A stretch of DNA of 64,000 nt from Orbicella franksi. Lineage: Eukaryota. The notes beneath the pieces were generated by a model. That model searched no databases. It was not told the origin of the DNA and worked only from the letters and a program-made list of their open reading frames with translations. Positions 1,418-1,539 of the stretch are shown in pieces. The stretch lies in contig OZ116700.1 of assembly GCA_964199315.1 (NCBI GenBank), positions 13,702,001 through 13,766,000 of the forward strand, written 5' to 3'. Both the position numbers and the translations under genes were made by a program. Numbering within the stretch: position 1 is the first letter of the stretch; every line of letters starts with the position of its first letter.

Positions 1418-1539
1418 CCTCTCACATTAGCCCTACCTCGTCGTGGTTGAGAGGCTTGTGTGCCTTGAGGACCCTGAGAGCTATGCTGGCATGAATTGCT
1501 GGACAGCCTGAAAGGAGAGAGGCCAGACTAAAGGGGCTA
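1418..1539 (+). ncRNA. Candidate HDV-like self-cleaving ribozyme, resembling the 5' end of RTE-clade LINEs
   Basis: P1 CCTCTCA 1418-24/TGAGAGG 1448-54; P2 TAGCCCT 1428-34/GGGGCTA 1533-39; P3 ACC 1435-37/GGT 1445-47; L3 TCGTCGT; single P1.1 pair G1440-C1455; J4/2 CTAA 1528-31. Resembles RTE/BovB 5' UTRs as recalled, not searched. Confidence 0.55.

Follow-up and report, generated by a model that had tools for sequence, protein, structure and literature searches.

What would a ribozyme of the hepatitis delta virus (HDV) type be doing in coral DNA with no open reading frame (ORF) of a long interspersed nuclear element (LINE) behind it? The question is raised by positions 1418–1539 of a 64,000-nt stretch of the Orbicella franksi genome (GenBank assembly GCA_964199315.1, contig OZ116700.1, positions 13,702,001 to 13,766,000 of the forward strand), the whole of which we call the window. 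A first-pass annotation, made from the letters alone, had described an HDV-like fold with an inverted P1.1 pair at this site and had taken it for a solo 5′ module of an RTE-clade LINE or a derivative resembling a short interspersed nuclear element (SINE). HDV-like ribozymes cleave at their own 5′ edge and, to our knowledge, those of animals are known almost only as makers of retrotransposon 5′ ends, together with the one in the CPEB3 intron. We propose, with a probability of roughly 0.58, that the site is a true HDV-like ribozyme of the RTE-LINE type, which was taken up and kept by a sub-clade of Crypton-like transposons and which would cut near the 3′ end of their transcript. The firm part of this proposal comprises the fold, its homology, its covariation, its position in the element and its conservation, all established by sequence comparison.

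Read directly from the letters, 1418–1539 on the plus strand holds the complete set of HDV double-pseudoknot elements in the right order, just as first annotated (Table 1). The P4 domain, which had been described as not clearly foldable by eye, folds into a base helix (1462–1466/1519–1523), a second short helix (CCU 1473–1475/AGG 1513–1515) and a distal hairpin, and its base helices agree with those of relatives. Inspection of one site carries limited weight: a relaxed home-made HDV-like descriptor also matches some dozen other sites on the two strands of the window, all of them unrelated, and a descriptor match alone is therefore weak evidence. The plain minimum-free-energy (MFE) fold, computed by a pseudoknot-blind method, is no better than that of shuffled sequences (z = −0.16). 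Judged by homology and covariation, the site is beyond chance.

A DNA search of the coral's own genome (497 Mb) returned a dozen loci whose similarity is bounded at about 1416 and 1543, the edges of the proposed fold, and searches seeded with distant matches brought in many further copies. The distant copies are the first ~165–225 nt of a ~3.3-kb LINE with a single 1029-amino-acid (aa) ORF, which contains RVT_1, DUF6451 and a weak endonuclease match, and with a (TAAG)n tail; LINE homologues of like build are found in molluscs, amphioxus and flatworms. One ORF with endonuclease and reverse transcriptase (RT), a length of 3.3 kb, a microsatellite tail and like-built homologues together mark this LINE as probably RTE-like, an assignment by architecture and not by a tree. 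In all three full-length copies compared (L073–L075), P1 starts with the very letter that follows a target-site duplication (TSD) of 10–14 bp. Across 64 distinct copies position −1 is random (T 24, A 15, C 14, G 11), and at +1, opposite a G, stands C in 49/64 copies and U in 10/64. These features indicate that the LINE 5′ terminus is the predicted ribozyme cut site.

The same coincidence is reported for RTE, R4, L1Tc and Drosophila R2 elements in PMC3774820, which cites Ruminski et al. 2011, and 5′ HDV-like ribozymes of LINEs are described in PMC3774820, PMC4908430, PMC3185411 and Eickbush & Eickbush 2010. The ribozyme in the window is a sequence relative of such 5′ ribozymes, with the same fold and, by prediction, the same cut at the element's first base in its LINE kin; it differs in lying after tyrosine-recombinase genes, with no RT ORF behind it.

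A first covariance model, built from 24 copies, matched every one of the 150 genome candidates scored, among which the window's own copy was absent; the rough candidate count was much larger, and the copy number is at least 150. Because that model included the window's own sequence, a second model (R2) was built from 21 LINE copies only, none of them of the window's short-P4 type. In the 64-kb window R2 gave one match only, at 1411–1555, with 57.3 bits and an E value of 4.9e-12; the closest relatives of the window copy scored 54–66 bits. By this comparison, the window ribozyme and the 5′ ribozymes carried by RTE-like LINEs of this genome are relatives, which upholds the RTE connection drawn in the first pass. 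The accompanying remark that no LINE ORF follows was also right: none is there, and LINE homology ends at ~1543.

Among the LINE copies, a 225-bp 5′ fragment at locus L012 (1485–1709), consisting of the ribozyme and little more, lies between 13-bp direct repeats. The first five letters of the repeat recur in the LINE at the break, and the unit resembles what a deletion at microhomology would leave of a full-length insertion. A SINE reading of this repeat-flanked unit of ~220 bp was rejected, as it turned out to be the start of the 3.3-kb LINE, up to nt 225. The window copy itself lacks TSDs, a LINE 3′ tail and a tRNA head, and the suggestion of a SINE-like derivative was not borne out. In four further copies (L047, L059, L064 and L068), long G runs are inserted between L3/P3 and the 3′ strand of P1, a recurrent decay route of the LINE ribozyme copies.

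Covariation was examined in an alignment of 66 model matches, of which 64 are distinct; P2 and P1.1, which are not in the model, were added afterwards. Over the 64 distinct copies, 90.7% of cells in the named structure are paired, compared with 35–49% when the 3′ partners are slid by 1–3 columns, and the covariation score is 0.326, compared with at most 0.083 for the slid versions. Changes on both sides occur in 7/7 P1 pairs and 8/8 P2 pairs. Different lineages pair P1 as CCTCTCA/TGAGAGG, CTTCACC/GGTGAAG, CCACCCT/AGGGTGG, CCGTTCC/GGAGTGG or TTGCCTC/GAGGCAG, and P2 as TAGCCCT/GGGGCTA, GGATCAC/GTGATCC, GGGATCACT/AGTGATCCC or TAGATTGC/GCAATCTA. A permutation test of matched against swapped strands was significant for both P1 (21/20000) and P2 (3/20000), although it is blunt, given that lineages share purine-rich strands, and the column-wise pair count is the better measure. 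The single P1.1 pair, G1440–C1455 in the window, had been flagged as unusual; it covaries, with G–C in 52 copies, A–U in 9 and no pair in 1.

P3 is 94% paired and, being almost invariant among copies, is uninformative on the fold in either direction. The P4 base helix covaries modestly, with U–A replaced by C–G in 9 copies and the next pair occurring as U·G, C–G or U–A, and distal P4 is a variable hairpin that is swapped for other hairpins in other lineages. The letters expected to matter for catalysis are kept: the first letter of L3 is U in 60/62 copies and the sixth is G in 58/62, and 63/64 copies have the putative catalytic C. The letter after this C is free (A 29, G 22, T 12) and is followed by A in 64/64 and A in 63/64 copies, giving C-N-A-A. 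Published hallmarks of HDV-like ribozymes include a G/U reverse wobble in L3, the catalytic C, a constrained A and a P1 of 6–7 bp, and active R2 ribozymes have little primary sequence in common other than the catalytic C and four further positions (PMC3774820).

By these comparative data, the nested HDV-like double-pseudoknot fold at 1418–1539 is genuine. One could still argue that the site resembles the descriptor by accident, with no RNA structure behind it, and the many unrelated descriptor matches, the MFE result and the lack of an Rfam match would fit such an accident. Covariation and the score under the LINE-only model already refute it; with a family this large, both pseudoknotted helices covarying, the catalytic letters conserved and the cut site falling at the LINE terminus, it is left with virtually no probability.

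The first-pass annotation spoke of a variant ribozyme core. The unusual features are real, and they are not private to this copy: all LINE lineages examined here share C or U at +1 paired with G, a single G–C P1.1, the L3 sequence U-U-G-U-C-G-U and C-N-A-A in J4/2. The C at +1, listed in the first pass as a departure, is accordingly the family norm, and on sequence evidence the variant core is standard for the whole LINE family. With HDV antigenomic and CPEB3 ribozymes the window copy shares a P1 of 7 bp, a P3 of 3 bp and an L3 of 7 nt with U1 and G6. The J4/2 of the HDV antigenomic ribozyme is C-U-A-A, as in the window copy, and the CPEB3 ribozyme likewise has a weak P1.1 of one pair. The differences from these two lie in P1.1, which is G(L3)–C(J1/4) and not C–G, and in the cut-site pair, which is C–G or U·G and not G·U.

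An amphioxus locus (L087, in a Branchiostoma belcheri assembly, 1553–1714) has the same core arrangement when read by eye. Its P1 pairs CCCTCAC (1553–1559) with GTGAGGG (1607–1613), P3 is GCC/GGT around TTGTCGT, and C1614 follows; farther on, C1701-T-A-A-A precedes nine letters (1706–1714) that pair perfectly with 1585–1593. Covariance-model scores for L087 are marginal (E = 0.06 and 0.96), and the parallel, from one locus, is suggestive. Should it be borne out, this core would be an old one and characteristic of this RTE lineage. The J1/2 of L087, which lies in an RTE-like element, is ~25 nt long. The public gene model there begins at an ATG at 1501, upstream of the ribozyme, and is probably an annotation artefact.

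The first pass had the ribozyme standing alone. It in fact occupies a fixed place in a tyrosine-recombinase element, downstream of three ORFs on the same strand. The repeat unit that contains it starts 3526 nt before the window, and its paralogue lies on another chromosome-sized contig. The unit encodes, in broken form, homologues of the three same-strand ORFs of locus L077 (351, 754 and 179 aa), with 33–53% protein identity to the intact L077 ORFs; the tyrosine-recombinase ORF homologue begins ~1.9 kb before the window. Phage_integrase is matched by 6/16 members of the 754-aa family (best E = 1e-8), the family profile matches XerA (E = 6e-4), and the sole homologue with a name comes from the coral Pocillopora, where it is listed as a hypothetical protein. 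On these domain matches the 754-aa family is a tyrosine recombinase. With a tyrosine recombinase present and no reverse transcriptase seen in the units, they look Crypton-like. The host element in the window is dead, its third ORF split over two frames and its recombinase ORF homologue in pieces.

The placement of the ribozyme in these elements is uniform. It lies on the coding strand ~400–530 nt past the third ORF wherever this was mapped, or ~450 nt past the upstream gene in L083, and the same placement recurs in at least four diverged lineages: window/L076, L077, L078/L079 and L083, the last from a separate public assembly. Every short-P4 copy found is within recombinase-element sequence. 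Homology between the window copy and its relatives ends at the ribozyme edges. Between lineages the ribozyme core is 88–94% identical, against 33–53% for the proteins, and comparisons of 120-nt flanks mostly give 51–63%, near the level of unrelated sequence, with the exception of the upstream flank of L079/L083 (88%). Changes that do occur keep the pairing: the fourth P2 pair is C–G in the window, U·G in L004–L009 and U–A in L083, and a P3 A–U pair has become G·U in L003. Such conservation and pairing-keeping changes look like purifying selection on the fold and argue against a mere fossil, a view that also follows from the retention of exactly the ribozyme and nothing else of the LINE. The idea of a solo RTE 5′ module thus stands as regards the type of ribozyme and falls as regards its setting; here the ribozyme is a conserved component of one family of tyrosine-recombinase transposons. 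No second ribozyme on the opposite strand was found in the recombinase elements at E up to 1.

A conserved structured RNA motif of ~80 nt (1095–1175 in the window) precedes the ribozyme in every lineage that bears one. The closing stem of this motif covaries, with four pairs changed on both sides. The motif has G4/C4 runs, which by eye form two short hairpins and which RNAalifold pairs differently, and it has no Rfam match. It sits after the recombinase genes in all lineages and is also present in 4/5 foreign loci that lack the ribozyme. In one sub-clade, therefore, the ribozyme was a later addition behind a 3′ module that already existed. The upstream region of L079/L083 has a second conserved hairpin and a G-rich box, after which come a short spacer and a run of 5–6 T that ends 1–2 nt before the cut site. 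Past the ribozyme, a poly(A) hexamer follows at 15, 31 and 18 nt in three lineages (window/L076, L077 and L083) and at ~300 nt in L078/L079; in the 700 nt that precede the ribozyme, nearly every copy lacks both AATAAA and ATTAAA.

Several smaller features accompany these 3′ regions. Between motif and ribozyme, the window has an A-rich tract of ~40 nt (1190–1232) and two tandem units of ~60 nt (1250–1345), and L077 has a longer A-rich stretch at the matching place. L079 carries a convergent gene for a 231-aa protein with a Myb_Rap1 domain (6328–7020, minus strand). The 3′ region of its plus-strand genes (5203–5460) is repeated in inverted orientation behind the Myb_Rap1 gene (5983–6219), and the ribozyme is present on the plus side only. 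Inverted repeats of ~500 nt in L079 (1026–1544 and 7399–7929) may be the element ends. On the 38-kb foreign contig of L083, two recombinase genes of ~1010–1030 aa (1039–4074 and 8001–11090) lie 4 kb apart, and the ribozyme follows the first only.

What we infer beyond this is cleavage and a purpose for the cut, along the following lines. One sub-clade of the tyrosine-recombinase (Crypton-like) transposons would have acquired a short-P4 version of the ribozyme and then retained it. The transcript of the element would cut itself between 1417 and 1418, detaching the ORF-bearing RNA, with a 2′,3′-cyclic phosphate end, from the ribozyme and all RNA downstream. The cut would most likely form the 3′ end of the element transcript or end its transcription, and the product might be a tail-less, structure-protected 3′ end that helps termination before a facing gene. 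An alternative purpose would be removal of the poly(A) tail as self-restraint. It is also possible, though we hold it doubtful, that the domesticated RTE ribozyme, the structured motif and the A-rich tracts together make up an RNA polymerase II device for 3′-end formation or termination without ordinary cleavage and polyadenylation.

Known systems offer partial precedents. Rodent Clec2 genes carry a hammerhead ribozyme in their 3′ untranslated regions (UTRs), between stop codon and poly(A) site; this is the same placement, with a different ribozyme class and in host genes, not a transposon. Theta ribozymes are HDV-like, lie beside phage tRNA genes and process the 3′ end of the upstream RNA (PMC10879173). 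They resemble the proposed arrangement in that an HDV-like ribozyme downstream of a functional RNA would make its 3′ end by cutting, but they are minimal phage ribozymes with no P4 and a tRNA substrate, whereas the setting here is an animal transposon with an mRNA-like transcript. Non-autonomous elements that keep a LINE ribozyme include NARTc of Trypanosoma (PMC3383444) and the R2 SIDEs (PMC3414825). These, too, have a ribozyme module without a LINE ORF; they are retroelements with a 5′ ribozyme and a LINE 3′ end, and the window copy has neither.

Three other accounts accept the fold and differ on its role. A single insertion might have placed a 5′ fragment of an RTE-like LINE in the 3′ region of an ancestral recombinase element, which would have carried it since as a neutral passenger. 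The ribozyme does derive from, or share ancestry with, LINE heads, many related recombinase elements lack it, and the host element in the window is dead. Yet LINE insertions are normally truncated at the 5′ end, and what was kept here is exactly the 5′-most ~105–125 nt; moreover, the core far exceeds proteins and flanks in identity, and its stem changes are wobble or compensatory. We consider a role-less passenger unlikely. A ribozyme downstream of a gene could instead free the RNA behind it, for instance as a separate transcript or as an ORF translated from a ribozyme-capped end, in keeping with the known retrotransposon role (PMC3774820) and with an ATG ORF that begins at 1579. That ORF is not conserved in the 93% paralogue and is absent from other lineages, the gene that follows in L079 runs in the opposite direction, and within 15–31 nt after the ribozyme comes a poly(A) hexamer; this account is highly improbable. 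The ORF at 1549–1920 was excluded as a ribozyme-initiated gene, as it is not conserved.

In the third account, which would be akin to the rodent Clec2 hammerhead, the ribozyme lies in the 3′ UTR just ahead of the poly(A) site, severs the poly(A) tail and thereby lowers transposon gene expression. AATAAA follows 15–31 nt after the ribozyme in 3/4 lineages, with none in the preceding 700 nt. On the other hand, an identical cut describes 3′-end formation, and the two readings differ in consequence only; the data do not separate 3′-end formation from tail clipping. The A-rich tracts and the structured motif upstream look like RNA built to survive without a tail, and the L078/L079 lineage has no nearby hexamer. 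Self-restraint seems rather unlikely to us as the purpose, and 3′-end formation remains the purpose that we favour.

A number of observations weigh against a retained, cleaving ribozyme that forms transcript 3′ ends. A poly(A) signal located past the ribozyme is equally compatible with tail removal and with 3′-end formation, and in L078/L079 the hexamer lies ~300 nt past the ribozyme, with none nearby. Five other foreign loci of the recombinase family gave no ribozyme match, and a loose descriptor applied to ribozyme-less foreign loci in search of diverged ribozymes returned obvious false positives only; the existence of related elements without the ribozyme implies that it is dispensable for the recombinase family. 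The recombinase-element type is represented by only about 10 copies, which leaves few events behind the covariation within this lineage. The G·U wobble typical of the HDV cut site is replaced by C at +1 paired with G, although this wobble is not counted as defining for the wider HDV-like family. Rfam was scanned with the window, the amphioxus locus and one LINE head; even with E values as high as 10 allowed, no HDV-like match came out, which is weak evidence because the HDV-like models there are lineage-specific. Finally, all helices of the window ribozyme are intact, and position 1439, the second letter of L3, is C in the window and T in 61 other distinct copies, the 97% paralogue included; this private T-to-C change at an otherwise invariant position may weaken the window ribozyme.

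The ribozyme class and RTE-type ribozymes are already published; what is new is a conserved second home at the 3′ end of recombinase transposon genes. The coral genome holds a very abundant ribozyme family with an inverted P1.1 and a C–G cut-site pair, and a second conserved use of it 3′ of genes in a DNA transposon without a recognisable reverse transcriptase. If cleavage is confirmed, one mobile element would have borrowed the catalytic RNA of another for processing of its transcript 3′ end, and the family would be a natural test of how far P1.1 and cut-site pairs of the HDV fold tolerate change. No Rfam model covers the family, and a model made from it would improve annotation.

Table 1. 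Coordinates of the ribozyme elements and of the surrounding host-element features in the window.
Feature	Position	Strand	Remarks
Repeat unit of ~5.7 kb, decayed recombinase element	1–2145 in window	+	92–93% identical to C10:6.36 Mb
Tyrosine-recombinase ORF homologue, end	1–174	+	tblastn against the L077 754-aa ORF, 41% over 398 aa
Third-ORF homologue (179 aa in L077)	541–1015	+	tblastn, 541–663 and 671–1015 in different frames
Conserved structured RNA motif, ~80 nt	1095–1175	+	Closing stem 1103–1108/1162–1167
Predicted cut site	Between 1417 and 1418	+	5′ edge of P1
P1 5′ strand, CCTCTCA	1418–1424	+	7 Watson–Crick pairs with TGAGAGG 1448–1454
J1/2, CAT	1425–1427	+	Length 2–4 nt among lineages
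P2 5′ strand, TAGCCCT	1428–1434	+	7 pairs with 1533–1539, one U·G
P3, ACC/GGT	1435–1437/1445–1447	+	Encloses L3
L3, TCGTCGT	1438–1444	+	7 nt
P1.1 5′ partner G, third letter of L3	1440	+	Pairs with C1455
P1 3′ strand, TGAGAGG	1448–1454	+	Directly follows P3
P1.1 3′ partner C, first letter past P1	1455	+	Pairs with G1440
P4 domain, short form	1456–1527	+	From folding
J4/2, putative catalytic C1528, then T-A-A-A	1528–1532	+	From sequence
P2 3′ strand, GGGGCTA	1533–1539	+	Homology to relatives stops at ~1543
AATAAA	1554–1559	+	15 nt past the ribozyme

Elsewhere in the window, at 4834–9600, lies a 1588-aa Helitron ORF, unrelated to the ribozyme, with DUF6570, Helitron_like_N and PIF1 helicase matches; it also carries an N-terminal Herpes_teg_N (deubiquitinase-like) domain and STPR repeats.

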